DNA of 64,000 nucleotides, from NCBI GenBank assembly GCA_021613535.1, contig CP075496.1:7254001-7318000 (forward strand). Direction: 5' to 3'. The position numbers and the translations under genes were made by a program. Below are positions 10,612 through 24,064 of this stretch, in pieces (the stretch's first letter is position 1; each line of letters begins with the position of its first letter). Origin of the DNA: Adineta vaga (taxonomy: Eukaryota; Animalia; Rotifera). The notes below the pieces were generated by a model. That model had not been told where the DNA came from. It searched no databases and saw only the letters and a list, made by a program, of their open reading frames with translations.

Positions 10612-13600
10612 AGTTATTATTTATCTGAAATAAAATAAAACGACAAAAGTTTATTTATACTCGATGTGTCATTATTCTCTCGTTGATTCATTTTATTCTT
10701 ACATCATCTATTCATTCATGTCAAAACTACTGCGCATAGTAATTTCTTTTTTTCCTACATAGATATGAGTAAAAGAGAATGCTGTTCTTTGGTACACATA
10801 TAACAAAAAAAAACAGCGACTAACGGTAGTTGTAATAGATGTGCGTCATTACTCGTCTTTTCATTCTTCCTTTCCGAGATAATTTTACAGTAATAGAAAG
10901 CAAAAAAGAAATCTTTCTTCTTTTGCTTTTTCTCTCCATTTTTTCCTCTTTTCTTCGTTTCGATCAATCGATTATATCGATAGTCTCAGAAGAAAAACAA
11001 CAGGAAAAAAAAAGAACCTCCAATGTCGGATCTCGTTTTTTTTCTGCTTTTTCTTCCTGTTTAAATATGATTCAGTTTATATTAAGTAAATTCTGAGTTT
11101 TCTTTTTCTAGAAATAAATTTTCGAAGAATTATTAATGTAATTGTTTAAGTAGTGTGCAAGAAAAGAAAAGCAGAGAGATATTAAAGCGATCAAAATAAT
11201 TCTAGAAAGAAAATTTTAATAATGAATTTGAATCGATCTTAAACTTACTTTTAATTAGCTTAATTTGTCTTTTTTTAAGCTCTTGTTTATAATATCTAGA
11301 TTACACTGATGACAATTAAATATGTAAAGGCTTCGTCTATTTCAACATATTGTTATTCTTTTCTATTCATTCTCACTTATTCTATGGGTTTCATGCTCGT
11401 TGATTGTATGCATATATATATATATACATACATATGTACACCTACAAAACATACATTAAATGATTATTTGAAAACCTCTTTTTTTTTCTTCTCTCGTCTT
11501 TCTTAATAAAACAATATATGTGGAATCAACAAACATACATACATTAAAATATCGCACAAGTACTTTTTGGGTTCTTTCTTCGTTTCATTCTTAAGATCAC
11601 TTACGAACAAATATGTCTCATGTATATTCGTTTTTTTCTATCTCATTTTCTGAATTAAAACACTGAGCAGGCATGGACAGCAACAAAAACAACTGTAGAA
11701 GAAACGAGAATGAATAAGCGAAGAGGAGATAAATTCTTATTACGGTTAACATACGCACGCACGCACATGATTGATTATGCACACCGTCTTTGTCTTCTCA
11801 ATCAACTACGTTTTATCTTTTTTTTTCTTTCGCCCTTTCCCTGTCTGTCTCTCTCTCCCCTTCTTCCTATTCATATATAAATATATTGTTGCTTGCCTGT
11901 CTTTTTCTGCGTGCTTTCCGGATAATTATAGAATTGTAACTAAAAGAAAAACTAAGATAGAGGAAAAAGAATCTCTTGTTTCATCGTCACTCTTCACATC
12001 CGGCAAAGCTAATATTCTCGTAAGATAAAAATAAAAAGAAAAGAAAATCTTGTTTCTTTACTTGACATACTTAAAATGAATAAGATGATAAATGTTAAAT
12101 TATATAGAACAAGAATAATTCAACCAGAAAAAATGAGAATAAAATCGTTCTTTCGTCCATAAAATGTCAAGCTACTTATCTGATAAAGCTCAATATCCAT
12201 ATTGATCGAGCATGAAACGGACACGGGACGTGCGACATGTACATGAGACAAATAAATACAAATAAAGAACATTTGAGTGCTCCACATACATTCATTTCGT
12301 AAAGAAGAAGAAGAAGAAGAAAGAGAAGAAAAAAAGGCAGAATGAAGAATACTTCAATTTACTTGGTAAATGTCATTGTCCAATATTGTCACTCAAACGA
12401 AAGAGAAAGAAACATCAAAACAATAACTATACACTCATTGCATTCGGATTATTAAGGGTATATATATGTGTGTGTGTGTATGTGTACTCCATCAAAGTAA
12501 CAGTTTTGATTGTTTGACGATGTTAGTAACTTTATACAAGAGCTTTGATGAATCAATCAACGCATACACATACATACACTAGATTTGTGTATATATAAAC
12601 AAGATAATGTATAAACACTATTACGATAACAAATTTGAACACAATAGTACTCTATATCCGTTCATATTAATAACTATTGAGACTAAAAGAACTTGTTCGA
12701 TGTAAATGACAATCAATAGCAATTATGTTCTTGATAGAAAAATGTCTCAATATTTAACTAATAAGGAAATTTTGTTTCTCGAAGAAGAGAACATAGTCTG
12801 TATGTTGTCTTCGATTCAACGTCATACTGAAAATTCTTATTTAATTAGAGAACGGAAAGAATTTCTCGTTACACAAACGATTAACACTCGAATTTGTAAT
12901 GCTTTTCCAAGTGACATATCGTTCATATTGATGAAGTCTATTACCTTGTCGTTTTATTCTAGTTTTTCGCTCAAACTTACAGATATAAAAAGAATTTCTA
13001 TTGATCCTGTAGACTCTTACACACGCATGTATGCAGAGATTAGTGTCACAATCTACATTAATGAATGTATCATTTTATTGCATCGAAATACCAATAATCT
13101 TCTTACTTGAAAGTTATAAATAAAACGAATGATGAGTAGAAGTTTTCAATTTAAATGAGACAAAGTAGAGTAATCGGATTAGTCCAATATCTATGATCCA
13201 AATTCTTCATGTTAATACTCAATAGTATCTGAAACTTGAGGAATACAATCTTTTTATTACGAAAGATTTATTTTTATAGTTGTAATAGAAGTAAAAAACC
13301 TTAGATAATGACTTATTCTAATCGACATCATAGAAATTCTTGAGAAGAATGTATGACAGAATAAAAACGACGTAGATGATTCGATTTTGCTTGAAACCTT
13401 TTCAAAAACCAATGGTTAATGTGCACTTATTCATTATAGTAATGTGTGTCTGTCATTTAAGACATAAAATATTGAATCGAATTGAGTGGTCTTGTATTTT
13501 TCGAAGGTATAGATCAATAGTATTAATAAAACTAAAAAAGGTTTCAGAAGCTGTATGACTCATATCAGATATTTTGTTATTATTAATTCCTTCGAGTTCT

Positions 13601-14426: not shown

Positions 14427-14514
14427 TTTCTTTTTAAAACCGACGAAATCATATTTCTTTTTAAAACCGACGAAATCATATTTCTTTTTAAAACCGACGA
14501 AATCATATTTCTTT
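14427..14514. repeat. Perfect 27-bp tandem repeat (TTTCTTTTTAAAACCGACGAAATCATA), ~3.3 copies
   Basis: Identical units at 14427-14453, 14454-14480 and 14481-14507, plus a partial unit. Confidence 0.95.
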
Positions 14515-14735
14515 ATATGTCAGAAGATTGACTCCTACTTGCTTTCAGAAATCGAAAATGGTGTTTATTCCAACACTGGTTGAGAACAGACAAATACTAA
14601 TATTGACTTCTTCGTCTTTTTTATTGTATGGATGACGTCAGTGAATAAAATTGCGTGGTTTTTGTAAGAGAATCATGTCTAACATAAATCTTATTATATA
14701 TTTCCAACACATTTATCATGTCTTATCCTCCCGTT

Positions 14736-14770
14736 TTCGTGAAAATCATGATCTATACTAGTATATAAAT
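14736..14770 (+). promoter_or_regulatory. Putative core promoter of microprotein A: TTCGTGAAAATCATGA followed by TATATAAAT
   Basis: The element matches 15/16 to one at nearly the same distance from the TATA box of paralog B. Confidence 0.6.
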
Positions 14771-14856
14771 GAAATGACTGACGGAAAATATATTATCAAA
14801 TCTTATAAGAATTCAACTTTCTCTCAAAAACAAATCTTAACAATTTACATACAAAG

Positions 14857-15099
14857 ATGACTGATTTCGACAAAATCGATGGTGAGTTCCATTGATTTTT
14901 ACACATATTTCATTAACTTAAAATCTCTATTTATTCTTAGGTCAAGCAGCACTCATATTTGTCACTGGTGATTTACAGGTATGTAATTTACAATTCATTT
15001 CTTTCATTGAATTTACAGATCTTATCTTTTTAGACTAATTCCAGTACAACTCTTACCTACAAAAGATATAACAACAATACAAGACAGATTTGGATATGA
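14857..15099 (+). CDS. Microprotein A, 42 aa, 3 exons: MTDFDKIDGQAALIFVTGDLQTNSSTTLTYKRYNNNTRQIWI
   Basis: Exons 14857-14881, 14941-14978 and 15034-15099. Introns of 59 and 55 nt with donors GTGAGT and GTATGT and TAG acceptors. Exon sizes and phases match paralog B. TATA upstream, AATAAA near 15304. Confidence 0.7.
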
Positions 15100-16701
15100 T
15101 CTTCGAAAAGAATAGTACAAAAATATGTTAATAATTGCAATGATGCATTTAAATATTATAAAAGAAAATTTATGACAATACAAGAACAGCATATATATTT
15201 ATTGGAAATGACTACTTACATATTATTATATGCTTCCTTTTTTTAATATTTCGATGTTTATATTTTCATTCCAATTTTGTTATATTTCGGATTATTAATA
15301 TGAAATAAATACTCAGAATAATATACAATTCGTCTGATTGATATTTAAAGAGATGAAAAAGGATTTTTATTTAATAAGTCTTAAGCAGAAAGTACTTTCT
15401 CATTTTATTCCTATTATTCGTTGGTATGTTGATAGATATGCAATCATACGAGTCATTTTGCGCGTCATTTCAGCCGTAACAAAACAGTACTCTACTGAAA
15501 GAGTATTCGAACTTGTTCACTTTTAAGTTGACTGACAATCTTTTTACGATAAAATATTTCTATTGAAAAGTAAAGAGTAACGTTCTGTTGCGGTTAAAAC
15601 GAGGCCTGAAATAAGCCCTATGATTATATATCTGTCAAAAGATTGAAGACTGATGGTAATAAAACAAGCTTGTACTAGTAGTGCATAATATCGCTCGGAT
15701 TATTTTTTTCATTTGCCGATGTTTACCGAATAAAGTAACCTTGCTTGTCAAAACATACCAAGGTAGATCATGGAAATAGATAAGCGGTTTCGTTTTTTTT
15801 CGCTAACAAAATTATAGAAGGTGGAGCGAGTGAAATATAACTACTATTGAAAATTTCTATGTTATGACTATTGGTTCGTAATGATAATTACGTAGACATT
15901 TGACACCCAAATGACGTTTAGAAATTATTAATTTTGAAGGCAGACCATTTATAATCACTGTACAAATAAATAAATATGATGTTTGATAATTCGATAAAAG
16001 TATATAAAAATATATTGTTTATAACATCGCCTATTCGATTGACATTAACGTCAGCGTTGTTTTGATCATTTAAGTAATACTACATAGTAGTATAAAAGAT
16101 AACACTATATATGAGATAATTCAGATACTCATTATCACACCCACCCTCAAAATTTTCAATCTTCAAATACAGTTAGTTTTGAGGGAATGAGAACAATGTA
16201 TCCCTAGAATTTTTAATGACTATATATAATACTTAGGAAATTCATTCGTTTAATCCATCTGTTCGTTTTTCTCGACTGAATTTCTAACTCAATTCATGAT
16301 AAAACCCCCATTATTCTTTTGTCCCGACTTAATTCCCAGATAACATGAGATAAGTTTATCTGCTATTGTATCATGAGAAATACGGTCTCCGTCAATACAA
16401 AGTTGACAACAGATGACTATCTCGCCTACATTTATTTTCTTGATACTATGACATCATTAAAGCATGTGCTGCACTAATTTATCTCTAGACAGTGTGCTAT
16501 TTTCATCGTCGTAGAGAGAAATTCCGTCATCTATTTATGATTTTGTGTTGGAAAATTCCAACTAAAGATCAAGTCATGTTTTATTGCTCATCTAATCTAT
16601 GTCATGTATGATACTCCTTGGAAATAACCCGCACTTCATTTCCAAAACCATGTCATTATACACGAGAAAACCTTTTTTCGTTCTTCCTTTCATTCTACCA
16701 C

Positions 16702-16735
16702 TTCGTCAAAATCATGAAAGATAACTTATATAAAT
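16702..16735 (+). promoter_or_regulatory. Putative core promoter of microprotein B: TTCGTCAAAATCATGA followed by TATATAAAT, with kB-like sites upstream
   Basis: Shared element with paralog A. GGAAAATTCC at 16550-16559 and GGAAATAACCC at 16620-16630. Confidence 0.6.
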
Positions 16736-16815
16736 AGTGTAAGAGTAACACACATATATCTATCAGCAATTGAAAACAAAAACATACAAACGAAAAAGAT
16801 TATTTCTCAAAAGTA

Positions 16816-17081
16816 ATGTTCAATCCTTCTGATTCTGATGGTAAGATGAACTATTTTTCATTCAATTTGAACTTCTATTGTGAAATTTTAGTTGCCGCTG
16901 CTGTCATGTATGTGAATGGAAGTATTCAGGTATATTTAGTGATTGAAAAGTATCTTTAATCTCAGGTTTTTCTATCTAGACAGAGAATATTATTGGTCTT
17001 GAATATACCGTTATTGATAACAATAACTCAAAAACGCAATTTAACTGCCAAATAGGCTGCTATGAATATCAACGATCTTGA
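16816..17081 (+). CDS. Microprotein B, 54 aa, 3 exons: MFNPSDSDVAAAVMYVNGSIQTENIIGLEYTVIDNNNSKTQFNCQIGCYEYQRS
   Basis: Exons 16816-16840, 16892-16929 and 16980-17081. Introns of 51 and 50 nt (GTAAGA, GTATAT; TAG). Conservative substitutions versus paralog A. AATAAA near 17281. Confidence 0.75.
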
Positions 17082-17498
17082 TTAAGAACGAAACATACCT
17101 TGGCAGAATGATAACGACACAAAACATACAAGTAATTATTGGTTGAAATGAAACAAAATTACTCTGCATAATAAATAGGTGTACAGAATACAAACATTTC
17201 TTTTTTTATTATGGATTCAGAACTATAATCATACGTAGTGTTGTAATTGTTTTTCATGTCATTTGTAAATTTATTGAAGGAATAAATGACAAAATAGCGA
17301 TTCAAAACTGAATGGTTTGATTTATAAGCGGAATTTGTTTTGCATAAAACATAAGAGAGCGTATACTAATATTAAAAAAGCGACAGAGAAATAATCACGG
17401 GGTCTAGAAAAGAAGAAGAAAGAAAAAATACTGCTAAAGTACTAATGTAAATAGAAGATTAGAATAGATAGATAGATTATTCATTGAAAAATACTGTT

Positions 17499-20400
17499 TT
17501 AAAATATGTTATTCGAAAGCCAATTAGTATCAAATGAAGCTATTTGTTCAATTCGTTCATTGTCAGAAAGAAGATGAACATTTGTTTCATCGACATGAGT
17601 CAATGACTCAATCAATTCTAAAAAAATAACAATAGATTAGAAAGTAATGCTCTGTGCAAAAATATCTTATTCATTTTTATAATCACACTACTTACCATCA
17701 AATGTCCATAATATTGAATTATCCGCATTGATTTCTCTTGTTGCATTCAATTTATTACTTGTTTCTTCAAAATTTCGTACTTGTAATAAACGAAGCACAA
17801 GGGTAATTCTTTAATATGAAAAATCAGTGATTTATAAAGAAAAATAAAAGTTTGAATGATCATACTGTTCTTGCGTAAGTAATCCAGTTCGATCGGTATC
17901 TAGAATCTCAAACCATCGTTTAAGATCAATCTTTGTACAATATCCACTGTTAACAATCGGTAAAAATGTGTCACGAAATTCAATCCAATTTATCGAAGAA
18001 ACTAAATAAAACAAATTAAAATATAGAACAAAAAATAATTGATTGATCTAGATCAAACCAGTCTGTTGTTTTTTATTGAGAAATAATTGAATAAATCGTT
18101 GTAAATCAGTATTAGAAATATTAATATTATGATTAATAAATTCATTTGTAATTTTTATAGTTAAATCTTCATCATTACTATTCAATTCTTTCTTATCGGA
18201 ATTAGCACCAACATTTTTGAATATTTGACCAAGTACTATCATATTGAAATGAAAGCATTCGTCTTCAATTAGATCATCTCTTACTTGATATTTCTTGAGT
18301 AAATTTTTCATCAGGTTTTGTCGAAAAATTGATTACAGGTACTTCTAATATAATCGTTTGATTTTCTGTTGGTGATTGATTAAACCATTGTTGATTCTCT
18401 GTTTCTTTCGATAAGACATTTTCATTGATATCATCAGTTGTTTTGATTGCTTCGATTAATTCTATTCAAAGAAAAAGATCTATTTTGCGAAACAACAATT
18501 TCTTTTTTGTCTATTACCATCAGCACTCAATTTTCCATCATGATCTGTATCGTATTTATCAACGATAATTTGTGCAAGATGAATTGTATCATTCGCTTGT
18601 AGAACTTCAAGTAATTCTAAATCAAAATCTTTCTTGTTTTAATTATTGGAGAAAGAACAATGAGAGTTTACCGGCAATTTCTTGAACAGATAAATGACCA
18701 TCTCCACTAATATCGAAGAGATCAAATAATTTTCGAATGTGTTGTTCCGTATAACGACCGGATACCATTGGAAAAAGAATATCACGAAATTCAATCCAAT
18801 CGAGTGTTGCTAGACGATCTTTACAAAAAGAAAAGAAACAATATATTTATTTATGAATCAGAGAGAGAGAAGAAAATAGAATTATTAGATACTTACGTTT
18901 TTGTGCAGATGCTTCTACCAGATATTTTCGGAATAAACTATCGAATAATGTTCGAATTAATTGATCACGAAATTCAAGGCGATCAAGTAATTTATCTGGT
19001 AAATCATTATCTATTTCTACGACATCTTCATTGTTAGCTAATTCATGAAATACATAACGAAGTTCTAAAATATTATAAAAAAAATTATGTATGCTCTCTC
19101 TCTCTCTCTCGGCTGGCAATATTAACCTTGAACGATGACGGCTAATTTTGGATCATCATAATTATCAGTTCGATTTTCAGAAGTTGTTGCATCCACTTTG
19201 AACACAAAAATATTTTTATTATTGTATCAATAGTAATGTCAATATTATGTTACCTTCGACATCAGTTAATGAAGAATCATCAGATGATTGTTTACTAGTA
19301 TCTTGTAAAGGAAAAGAATGAGTTTCAAGTAAATGATCGTCACTGGTTTTGGTTGAGGAATGATAATCAATACGATCATCCTCCTCTGTTCTATCAATAA
19401 GAGAAGAATGACTGTCTCCTTCTCTTTTTGTTTGATTAGATGATTCAATTTGCGATAATTCAGATTTATTGTCCTGAGTTAATAAATTTGTATCTGATTG
19501 AGAAAGACTTTGTTTTCTTTCTTCTTGTGACGCATTATATAAGTTAAATGATGAGGATCGTGATCCTTTCATATCAGTATCTAGAGATACTTCATATTCT
19601 TCATGTGAAGACTGTTCAGGAGTAGAAGTAGAAGAGCGATGTTCACTGTGATCTGGATGACTATTTAATCGTTCATCACTCACAGGTAATGTTCTTTCTT
19701 CATGTTCAATATTATCATCTCTTTCATTATTCAGTTGAATGGATTGATCGACAACATGTTGCAATTCATGTCCTCGAAGAAATACAAAGAAATACATTTA
19801 CTAATGGGGCAAACTCATGTAAAAACCTAATAGTTACCTTCAACAGTCGAGGGTGAACCGTCTGTATCAGAAGAACTTTGAACTTCAGGCGATGCTTCAG
19901 GATCTGTTGGTGAAGGTAACATTGATTGAAGGACATCAGAAGTTAGCGGTTGATCTTGTGTCATGGCAGGTGCAGTTGCTGAAGTAATTGAACGTTGAAA
20001 ATCAGATGACAATATTGAGTCTATGGAAGCTTTGCGAGACGTGGACTGATGTTCTGAAGTAGAACCTGATGGTGGTTGTTGTTCTGGACTTATCGTAGCG
20101 TTTGTTGTCGATAGACGTCTTTGAGCATCAGTTGACACTGCCGAGCCTGTTGAAGATGTTCGCGATCGTGGAGGATGTTCAAAAACTGTTGAAGAATTAA
20201 CTACAGAAGAACGTCTTCTGTTTTCAGATGGTTCCAATGAAGTTGTCGAAGATTTACGTGATGTAAATTGATGTTCATATGAAGAAGATATAGGTTGTTC
20301 TTCTTCTACATTGGTTTGAGTTGTACTCAATGTTACACCATCATTTACTGACGATTTACGGGATGATGGTTGATTTTCTAAGACCGTTGAAGTATGTCCT

Positions 20401-23400
20401 ACGGAAGGTCGTCTTGACGCATCAGGTGTTATTGATGAGCTTACTGAAGACGTATGTGTTGAGGAGTGAGGTTCATTGGTTGAAGTTGGTAATTGCTGAT
20501 CTGGGACTATGGGAATAGAACTTGTCGAAGTACGTCTCTGACCATCTGATTGTACCACCGAATCAATCGATGATTTCCGTGATGCAGACGGTTCCTGTTC
20601 TGAAGTTGCAGATGTTATAGTTGAAACTGTTTCTTTATGTATATCAGGTAATGTTTCTGAAGCTACGGATGATTTACGTGACGAAGATTGATATTCTTGC
20701 GAAGGTAATGCTGGCAATTGACGAACATCAGATATTGTTGGTTGTTGTTGTTGCTGCTGCTCGGAACTTATTGTGACACCAGATGCAGAAATACGTCTTT
20801 GAGTATTGGATGATATGTCTGAGCTTACTGATGATGTTCGCGTGGACGGTAGTTGTTCAGATTGTAGTTGAAATGTTTATGGTAGAAGGACGTCGTTGAG
20901 TATCAGATGGTTGTTGTTCATCAGCTGTGGAAATATGTACCACAGAAGAACGCTTCTGATCACTAGATGGTAATGTTGAATCAACTGAAGACTTACGAGA
21001 TGGTGACAAATGTTCTTGCATAGAAGGTGATAATGGTTGAGTAACATCTGCAACTGGCGAGCTATCTGATGTAGAAACACGTCTTTGAACATCAACCGAT
21101 ACTCCTGAACCCACAGATGCAGAACGCGATGAGGGTTGATGTTCTCCTGACGAAGATGAAGATGACTGTTCAACATGAGAACTAGATGTTTGTTGTTCCG
21201 GAAATAGTGAAACATCATCAGTCACAGGAACTTGTCGTTGAACATCAGATATTCCAGACGAATGGAGTGATGATTTGCGTGATGATGGTTGACGTTCTTC
21301 AGAAGAATCTAATGGTGTTTGACGCGTGTCAGCAGCTGCTGATTGTTGCTCTGAGTCTACTGAAACACCAGCTGTAGAAGGACGTCTGTAATGACTACTT
21401 GACGTTGACGATCTACGTGAAGAAGATGATGATGGTTGTTGTTGTTGTTGTTGTTCTACAATCGGTGACGTATTGATAGTAGATGAACGTCGTTGATTAT
21501 CAGATGAAGCTACTGCACTTGTTGAAGATTTACGTGATGATGACTGATGTTCATCTGAAGGCGTTGAAGGTGATTGGTGCGCATCAATTTCTGACTTTTG
21601 TTGCTCTGGAATAGCTGTAACACTGCTGGTAGACAGATGCCTTTGAACATCAGATGGAACAGTTGAGCTTACAGAAGATGTACGAGAGGATGGTGGATGT
21701 TCTTGAGCAGTTGAAGGACGTCGCTGACTATCAGATATATTTAATGTTATTTGCTCTGAATCAGTAGATGTTTGCTTTCCTTGTGGTATTGTCTTGTCTG
21801 CTTCTAATATTGGAATAGATGGCAGACTAGTTGGCGTTGATTGAAGTTCAGGTGTTGTCACAGGTGATCGTTGAAGTTGAGAAGTTTCGGATTGTTCTTC
21901 TCGTGATAACAGAAGAGCGGGAGAGGTCGATGAAGTAGGTGATTGTCGTATTGCAGTACTTGTTGAAGAAGTTCGTGATGATAATTGTTGCGCTTCAGTT
22001 ACTGAAGACGAATGATCTTCTTCTGTAAAATTAGATGCAGATACATTTGAAGTTTTCTCATTGTTTTGAGAAAAATCAATGTCACTTGTTACAATTTGCT
22101 GTTGACCATATAAATTATTTTGCACAGTAGGTGATAATCCAATCGAATAAATATTATTTGTTTGAATATTATTATCTTCACTAAGTAAATCAAAGTTTGA
22201 TTGAACAATTTGTGCAACTGTAAGATTCTTCAAAAAATAGAAAAGATTTTTTGTGAAATTTTCAATATTGATTCTTATTTCGTACCTCATCTTGTTGTTG
22301 ATCATTCAATTTACTTTGATTTGTATTATTTGCCGACCATACTGTTCTATCTGTATAAATCAATATTTTTTGTTCGAAGAAAGAAAAAAAATAACAAAAA
22401 GTTTAACTTAATTTATTGTACTAAACCACGTTTATCATCTAATTGGCTTCTTTCATTCTCTAGCCTTCAGATCGAACAAATACAGAAGTCTCACACATAT
22501 GTCTATGCTAAATTGCATTTCAGTGCAAATAATAATTGTCTTCTATACATAAGCACACAGACACACATACAATATGTAGGAATCGAAATGAAAAAAAGAA
22601 AAGGTAGCATTAAAAAAACGCACGCAATGATGGTTGTTACAAAATTTGTCAAACTCAACTATTTGTTCAAATAATGAAAGTTAATTGTGTTGAGTGCTTC
22701 TATATTTATTCAGTCAAATTTCTGGTCTCACCTGTCAATGTATTACTGTTGCTTCGTAATGATGTTGGTCTCATTAAATGTGTTATACTACTCGTAGATT
22801 GTTTTCGTCGATATTCGCTTTCTAAAACACCACGATAAAGTGTCAATTCAAATTTTAAATTTCGATCATATTCAGCTAGATGATTTAATTTGTCTTTCAA
22901 GGTTTGCAATTCTAATTTGCTACATTCTAATTCATTATCTTTCGTTGTTAATTGTTGTCGACGTTCATCACGTAATGAAAAGAATTCAGCTTCCTATGAA
23001 AACAGAAAAACAAATTTTATTTTTAAAAGTTATATCAATTTGAATTATTTTCATACCATAGCTTGCACACGTTCAATTAACGTTTGATTATGATCGTTGA
23101 GTGTTGTTAATTCTTGTAAGACAGTTTGATGTTCATCATGAAGTTGTTCATAACCTTCCTGGTTGGAAGATTGATGAAATGTATTGGTTTCATTTGTTTG
23201 TACACTTTCTTCAAGTATCTGTAACATTTGTTTATATTCATTGTCCATTTGTTTCAATTGTGTTTGATTTAAATCATTGAAATCTTGTCGAATACGATTG
23301 ATTGATTCACTTAAACGTGATAGAAGATATTCATTTGCTTCGGCTTGTGTTTCAAGAATTGTTTCACGTTCTTCATCAAGAAATTCTTTAGTTGTTTGCA

Positions 23401-24064
23401 TTAATTTAACTTCTTCTTTTAATGTTTGAATTTCAAACTAAATAAGGAAAAGGATATCAATGAAAAATCAATTAATTCCCGTTAATCTTACTTCTGTTTT
23501 CGATCGTTCAATACAAATTCGTTCTAATTGTATCTGTAAATTGTCAACTTTATCCATTGCTTGTTGATAATTTTGTTTTTCATTATCAACATAAACTAAT
23601 AAAGTTTGAATCTGTTGATTTAATTTATTGAATTCATTTCGAACGATTCGTTCTTGTTTTTGTAATGCATTCAATCGTTTCACTTGTTCTTTCTCATTAC
23701 TAGCAACAAAATGAATTCGTCGTTTAAGTTCATCTCGTTCTTTTAAATACCGTTTGGCTCGAGTTTTTGATTGATAACGTTCGAGATGAGCTTCATTTAA
23801 TGTTTGACTTTGTTCACGAAAATCATTTGGTAAACGTTTCAAATGATTTTCTAATGCTGAAATATATTCTTTTCGTATTTGCTCAATATGTTCTTGTAAT
23901 TGTCGGTTTTCACCATCCATGGTTTTCATATCATTAAGATATGTTTGAAGATTGGTATTGAGAGTTCGAAATTCTTCAGTTTGAATATTATATGACTGAC
24001 GAGATTGTTCAGCACGATTAACAACATCATCAATAAATTGATCATCGTCAAATAAACTAAACAT
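17499..24064 (-). CDS. Giant IF-rod protein with Ser/Thr-rich repeat tail and C-terminal EF-hand modules (~1800 aa, ~16 exons; one frameshift near 20860)
   Basis: Rod start motif LNTNLQTYLNDMKTMDGEN, coil-1B end EIQTLKEE, rod end LKFELTLYRGVLESEYRR. A strong phase-1 donor (G|GTGAGA, 22731) joins in frame via exons 22459-22427 and 22350-22286 to the repeat exon starting at 22227. EF loops DISGDGHLSVQE, DTDHDGKLSADE and DTDRTGLLTQEQ. Stop TAA ends at 17499. Confidence 0.7.
19900..22000 (-). repeat. Degenerate protein-level repeat, about 15 units of the type EHQPSSR[K/T]SS(V)xSxxxSDxQRRxS
   Basis: Recurring SSRKSS/SRTSS motifs, often paired with SDxQRRxS, in both ORFs (20857-22305 and 19827-20717) and across the frameshift between them. 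Confidence 0.8.

Follow-up and report, generated by a model that had tools for sequence, protein, structure and literature searches.

Animal smORF, or microprotein, genes such as tarsal-less and sarcolamban of Drosophila are independent transcription units with products of fewer than 100 residues, of a kind that ORF-length filters overlook and that is recognised through frame-specific conservation. The four genes described here, from the bdelloid rotifer Adineta vaga, resemble them in each of these respects. At the same time they differ in being monocistronic, with two or three exons and products without a membrane helix, and in having no sequence relative that our searches found outside A. 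vaga. A second useful comparison is with CRE-plus-TATA promoters of the somatostatin and c-fos type, known from cAMP- or stress-responsive genes: in two of the four genes, g1 and o1, a canonical TATA box is preceded at 85-130 nt by a perfect TGACGTCA, and the 12-mer around this predicted bZIP site has been kept since the genome duplication, whereas g2 and o2 lack TGACGTCA. Overall, we favour with moderate confidence a joint reading in which the four genes form a taxon-restricted microprotein family, descended from a tandem pair that preceded tetraploidisation and acting through a conserved core.

The window, by which we mean the whole 64-kb stretch of DNA analysed, lies on A. vaga chromosome 4 (C4:7254001-7318000), in a genome of 100.8 Mb on six contigs, whose G+C is about 30% and whose introns measure 50-60 nt. 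An earlier note on this DNA had proposed two three-exon genes here, with exons of 25 and 38 nt, equal intron phases and short introns, and recomputation from the sequence reproduced these models exactly. Both lie on the + strand. The first gene, g1, comprises a 25-nt exon that opens with ATG and ends in phase 1 after an Asp codon (14857-14881), a 38-nt exon that encodes the conserved hydrophobic core (14941-14978) and a 66-nt exon that includes the stop codon (15034-15099); its introns, of 59 and 55 nt, are both GT..AG, and its product has 42 residues. The exons of g2 measure 25 nt (16816-16840), 38 nt (16892-16929) and 102 nt including the stop codon (16980-17081), separated by GT..AG introns of 51 and 50 nt, and encode 54 residues. 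Intron phases are 1 and then 0 in both genes, each ORF opens at the first ATG past the predicted start site with no upstream-ORF architecture, and an AATAAA stands 205 nt past the stop codon of g1 (15304-15309, +) and 89 nt past that of g2 (17170-17175, +). The pattern T.....L.Y...NNN, which the earlier note read in both third exons, fits g1 exactly, while g2 has one additional residue ahead of the Asn run. Intron 1 of g2 (16841-16891, 51 nt) contains no stop in frame, so that its retention preserves the frame; the ORF at 16816-16959 (47 aa) corresponds to that unspliced form. In intron 2 of g2 an alternative in-frame acceptor follows 6 nt further on.

The pair had also been described as hidden, a label that is only partly right and does not hold for g2. 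An exhaustive protein search with g2 exon 3 returned GenBank UJR31831.1 (54 aa, identical to the three-exon g2 model) together with two weak matches; the entry, A. vaga hypothetical protein I4U23_019308, stands alone in a singleton cluster. The model of o1, a gene on chromosome 1 that is described below, is identical to GenBank UJR14876.1. The A. vaga annotation was built from PASA transcript alignments, GeneMark, Augustus and EVidenceModeler (EVM) (PMC8494291), and given this PASA-based pipeline the 54-aa three-exon call for g2 probably rests on transcripts. FUN_001861 and FUN_001860, considered as a route to expression through the supplements of a desiccation and radiation study (PMC10809525), are other genes; the FUN_ numbering does not map to GenBank tags, since no ZZ or NHL gene lies near o1.

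A bare 25/38-nt GT-AG architecture is not rare. A scan that required an ATG, exons of 25 and 38 nt with a GT-AG intron of 44-75 nt between them, then a second intron and an ORF, found 4 loci in the window, and shuffled windows gave about 2.25 models. The g1 and g2 proteins score 45 in an ungapped BLOSUM62 comparison over 41 residues, against -30 +/- 13 for shuffles, and the exon-2 peptides alone give p = 5e-5. The exact 16-mer of their promoters has 3 copies in the 100.8-Mb genome, 2 of which are the g1 and g2 promoters themselves. This combination of similarity and a rare 16-mer is far beyond chance, and the earlier reading of g1 and g2 as related genes is borne out: they are true paralogues with a conserved exon structure.

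What had been taken for a pair is in fact a quartet. The rod exon of an intermediate-filament (IF) gene in the window (23468-24064, -) has a 59%-identical copy at C1:5857289-5857852, and when 50 kb around this chromosome 1 copy were scanned with exon peptides and then read, synteny revealed a second tandem pair, o1 and o2, beside the equivalent IF gene on the homoeologous chromosome. o1 (L066:8571-8343, -) has exons of 34 and 146 nt, one 49-nt intron and a product of 59 residues; in o2 (L066:7594-7356, -) three exons, of 25, 38 and 60 nt, are separated by introns of 59 and 57 nt, and the product has 40 residues. The phase-1 junction after Asp is kept in both, and the 25/38-nt exons are kept in o2. 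In o1 the second intron is missing: L066:8488-8343 (-) forms one uninterrupted exon, the homologue of exons 2 and 3 in g1, g2 and o2, so that an intron must have been lost or gained since the genome duplication.

A six-frame comparison shows the two regions to be collinear in inverted order, with 6.1-12.6 kb of the window corresponding to 36.9-31.4 kb of the chromosome 1 region and 17.5-24.1 kb corresponding to 27.0-22.3 kb. GPCR, IF and E2 gene classes flank both regions, and to the left and right alike the neighbouring genes agree in order and orientation between 6.1-24.1 kb of the window and C1:5.857-5.872 Mb, which identifies the pairs as ohnologous. Chromosomes 1 and 4 are one of the homoeologous pairs (1-4, 2-5 and 3-6) that derive from an ancient tetraploidisation (PMC8494291). 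Within the collinear stretch, g1, g2 and their convergent IF gene are mirrored by o1, o2 and an IF gene. The N-termini of g2 and o2 both read M-F-[ND]-P, and the two genes also share the 9-mer GTCATTATA, which stands at -164 from the g2 ATG (16652-16660, +) and at an equal distance in o2. Similarly, the 12-mer GATGACGTCAGT upstream of g1 (14631-14642, +) recurs identically upstream of o1. The mirrored order, the common start and 9-mer of g2 and o2, and the 12-mer of g1 and o1 therefore place the tandem duplication before the genome duplication. The tetraploidisation itself was reportedly dated by Hur et al. in 2009 to before the divergence of the bdelloid families. About 650 nt upstream of o1 lies a Tc1/mariner-type transposon of about 1.6 kb (C1:5864369-5865953; L066/L065), with doubled terminal repeats and a 344-aa open frame (Pfam DDE_3 and HTH_Tnp_Tc3_2); the corresponding stretch of the window has no such element.

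In front of each window gene stands the 16-mer (14736-14751, +, in g1; 16702-16717, +, in g2) followed by the TATA box TATATAAAT (14762-14770, +, and 16727-16735, +), at a start-to-start distance of 26 nt in g1 and 25 nt in g2, just where the earlier note had placed them. The shared promoter element that it had claimed is present as the full 16-mer in g1 and g2, but only its core, AAAATCA, is conserved family-wide: AAAATCA lies 13-23 nt ahead of TATAAAT in all four genes, and the remainder of the 16-mer is common to g1 and g2 and largely also to o1. The genome-wide scan that had been suggested for the 16-mer did not define a regulon. It found 49 one-mismatch 16-mers, against 8 for the reversed control, and since most of these lie in coding-looking sequence without a TATA box, the full 16-mer marks no regulon across the genome. 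The arrangement AAAATCATGA-N8-18-TATAAAT has 10 matches in the genome, against 2 for the reversed control; seven further sites of this kind (L069, L071-L075 and L078) lead into no gene that resembles the family, some of them standing ahead of other genes, and AAAATCATGA may be a more general promoter-proximal site.

The 12-mer of g1 and o1 holds the perfect palindrome TGACGTCA, a CRE-type bZIP site, which occurs once in the 64-kb window, upstream of g1, and twice in the 50-kb chromosome 1 region, one of the two being upstream of o1. Some 220 nt upstream of the g1 promoter element there is also a perfect tandem repeat of 27 nt x 3.3 (14427-14514, +), and the perfect identity of its units indicates a recent expansion. 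Each unit carries GAAATCATA, within which lies the core of the promoter element, and the repeat may be part of the g1 promoter.

Could the shared element instead be a heat-shock-factor (HSF) site, and the products stress-inducible effectors that respond to heat, desiccation or radiation, as the word 'inducible' in the earlier note would suggest? We consider this unlikely. The g1 and g2 elements read TTCnnGAAnnTCA, that is, two perfect HSF units and one imperfect one, and this TTCnnGAA-containing sequence stands immediately upstream of the TATA box, a placement that it has in common with the heat-shock elements (HSEs) of A. vaga HSP70 genes. Promoters with a TATA box and a CRE are, moreover, characteristic of inducible genes. 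However, at least three alternating nGAAn/nTTCn units in 5-nt phase, the pattern that defines a heat-shock element, are found in none of the four genes: the third alternating unit is missing from g1 and g2, and the motif is absent from o1 and o2, the spacing of the TTCnGAA in o1 being wrong and o2 lacking TTC/GAA units altogether; we therefore reject the heat-shock-element reading. AAAATCA alone is conserved across the family, and elsewhere in the genome the one-mismatch 16-mers are coding-looking and without a TATA box. Canonical three-unit HSEs do occur upstream of the A. vaga HSP70 genes at L039/L045 (C6:4.71 Mb), L038 (C3:10.99 Mb) and L041 (C5:13.14 Mb), that of L039 lying 45 nt ahead of TATATAAAG, and they offer usable positive controls for promoter work.

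The argument for the proteins themselves, and for the favoured reading as a microprotein family, comes from comparison of a 72-nt core across g1, g2, o1 and o2, made up of the last 7 nt of exon 1, the whole of exon 2 and the next 27 nt, or 24 codons. Read in the proposed frame, this core has a sum-of-pairs BLOSUM score of +190 and contains 0 stops, whereas the two alternative frames score -8 and -70 and run into 3 and 12 stops. The first, second and third codon positions are.56,.49 and.40 identical, and introns show.32 against.34 expected at random. Core pS, at.64, equals the.65 obtained for unrelated codon strings, while core pN, at.48, lies below its null value of.70 +/-.06. Neutral sites are thus saturated and amino-acid sites are not, which argues for purifying selection, and the protein-level selection that the earlier note had proposed is borne out by this frame-specific conservation; a numerical dN/dS is not meaningful here, because the synonymous sites are saturated. 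Constraint must nevertheless be weak, given that whole-length amino-acid identity is only 20-33% pairwise and that core pN/pS exceeds 1 for the o1-o2 pair; the C-terminal tails are unalignable. What the four products share is a motif of Asp, a split codon, a small or hydrophobic strand-like stretch, [GS]-x-[IL]-Q and then [TS]-x5-L. To judge from these comparisons of sequence, the family is fast-evolving and older than the bdelloid tetraploidisation, and all four members are very probably real, selected, protein-coding genes.

Two alternatives must be weighed against this coding signature. The loci might be transcribed with their short ORFs merely incidental, the conserved entity being an RNA or the promoter and the proteins prediction noise. 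Such a reading draws on the tiny size of the proteins and their lack of relatives, on an architecture that arises about twice per window by chance and on the low amino-acid identity; we nonetheless judge it quite improbable, as it sits badly with conservation confined to one frame in four copies (0 stops, against 3 and 12 out of frame), with identity that drops from codon position 1 to 3 while introns stand at the random level, with non-synonymous divergence below random expectation, and with an Rfam search in which no family reached threshold. Alternatively, the genes might be in decay, as what remains of the 5' part of a formerly larger gene or as de novo ORFs of recent origin under neutral drift; the unalignable tails, the differing lengths (40-59 aa), the loss of intron 2 from o1 and the weak constraint might suggest this. 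Decay is very improbable in our view: open frames, start codons, splice sites and promoter elements are kept in four copies past neutral saturation, and at this base composition an estimated 8% or so of random codons would be stops, so that four open frames would be very unlikely without selection.

The family proteins have acidic or neutral N-termini, with a net charge of -2 to 0 over the first 10 residues, and their highest 19-residue Kyte-Doolittle means are 0.55-1.1. Judged by this N-terminal charge and hydropathy, they have no signal peptide, as had been claimed, nor any membrane span. It had likewise been said that no known family could be assigned, and none appears in Pfam, PDB or Atlas. 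Pfam-A gave no match for the exon-3 pieces, the full g2 or the o1 piece, the best being VbhA, whose 12 bits (E 0.22) fall short of the gathering cut-off of 25.9; the PDB search with a g2 and o1 profile returned best E values of 1.2 and 1.5, and Atlas yielded no relative. Metagenome scans were blank, one of them a weak result in that its peptide patterns span exon junctions, and protein word searches found A. vaga entries only and no other bdelloid, which says little with exons this short. A Woesearchaeota archaeon repeat protein, considered as a relative, covers 18 residues of the private tail of g2 and nothing else, and we treat the match as chance for that reason. Within the genome, DNA BLAST and exon-3 protein searches returned only the queries themselves, a degenerate exon-2 pattern that allowed as many as 2 mismatches matched g1 and g2 only, and a four-sequence exon-2 profile, applied to the window and to 50 kb of chromosome 1, detected the four genes only; strongly diverged, dispersed copies would escape searches of this kind.

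Barely credible to us is the proposal that the core is a self-templating beta-strand, an amyloid signalling module of RHIM or cRHIM type through which the genes of a pair co-assemble, for although a hydrophobic strand with [GS]-x-[IL]-Q and then polar Asn/Ser/Thr-rich sequence recalls, as a lead rather than a test, the surroundings of RHIM tetrads, and although the pair was co-retained after genome duplication, the tetrad (I/V)-Q-(I/V/L/C)-G is absent because Q precedes T or S (the family has [IL]-Q-[TS]-x, and o2 M-T-S), and Pfam shows no match at E <= 1 save the meaningless VbhA hit at 0.22.

Regardless of the biochemical role of the products, the history and general workings of a four-gene microprotein family can be sketched. 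An ancestral tandem pair formed before the bdelloid tetraploidisation and survives today as g1-g2 on chromosome 4 and o1-o2 on chromosome 1, each pair lying just 3' of, and convergent with, an equivalent intermediate-filament/EF-hand gene. Each gene has a TATA promoter of its own, with AAAATCA 13-23 nt upstream and an AATAAA 89-205 nt past the stop codon; the two genes of a pair may be co-expressed through the shared proximal element, and the g1/o1 lineage may additionally be driven by a CRE-binding bZIP factor. Selection has held the reading frame, the splice sites and a core of about 24 residues, while introns, UTRs, synonymous sites and tails have become randomised. The products, of 40-59 residues, would be soluble cytosolic or nuclear proteins. 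One tentative possibility, which we put forward although we think it rather doubtful, is that the short core is a strand through which the proteins bind a larger partner or one another, the tandem sibling included, with the freely evolving tails tuning that interaction. The single-sequence AlphaFold models, with mean pLDDT values of 62 and 66, are discordant, g2 forming a beta-hairpin in its private tail and o1 two helices, and models as poor and discordant as these lend the binding-strand mechanism no structural support. Bolder still is the idea that the core is a new interaction or self-assembly module and that the proteins of a pair co-assemble as a switch in a bZIP-driven, bdelloid-specific stress or immune response. 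We regard the chance of this as remote; if it were true, the retention of both genes on each homoeologous chromosome would follow from a requirement that the two stay balanced.

The family is of interest for several other reasons. Two isolated GenBank hypothetical proteins, UJR31831.1 and UJR14876.1, are now linked to each other and to two further copies, and the bdelloid gene set gains an orphan family of four members whose core motif and promoter architecture are defined. It also provides a worked example of how, in a compact animal genome, genes that are very short yet split into several exons can be validated with no recourse to expression data, where ohnologous copies serve as an internal comparison old enough for saturation at every neutral site. 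The family has no bearing as yet on desiccation or radiation tolerance, and no new mechanism is shown. Elsewhere in the window, a 134-aa ORF at 12706-13110 is probably not a gene: it has no Pfam match and, unlike its neighbours, no counterpart in the homoeologous region. Finally, positions 20001-22000 stand out in composition, with G+C of up to 0.41 and GC skew of up to +0.29, against about 0.30 and 0 elsewhere.
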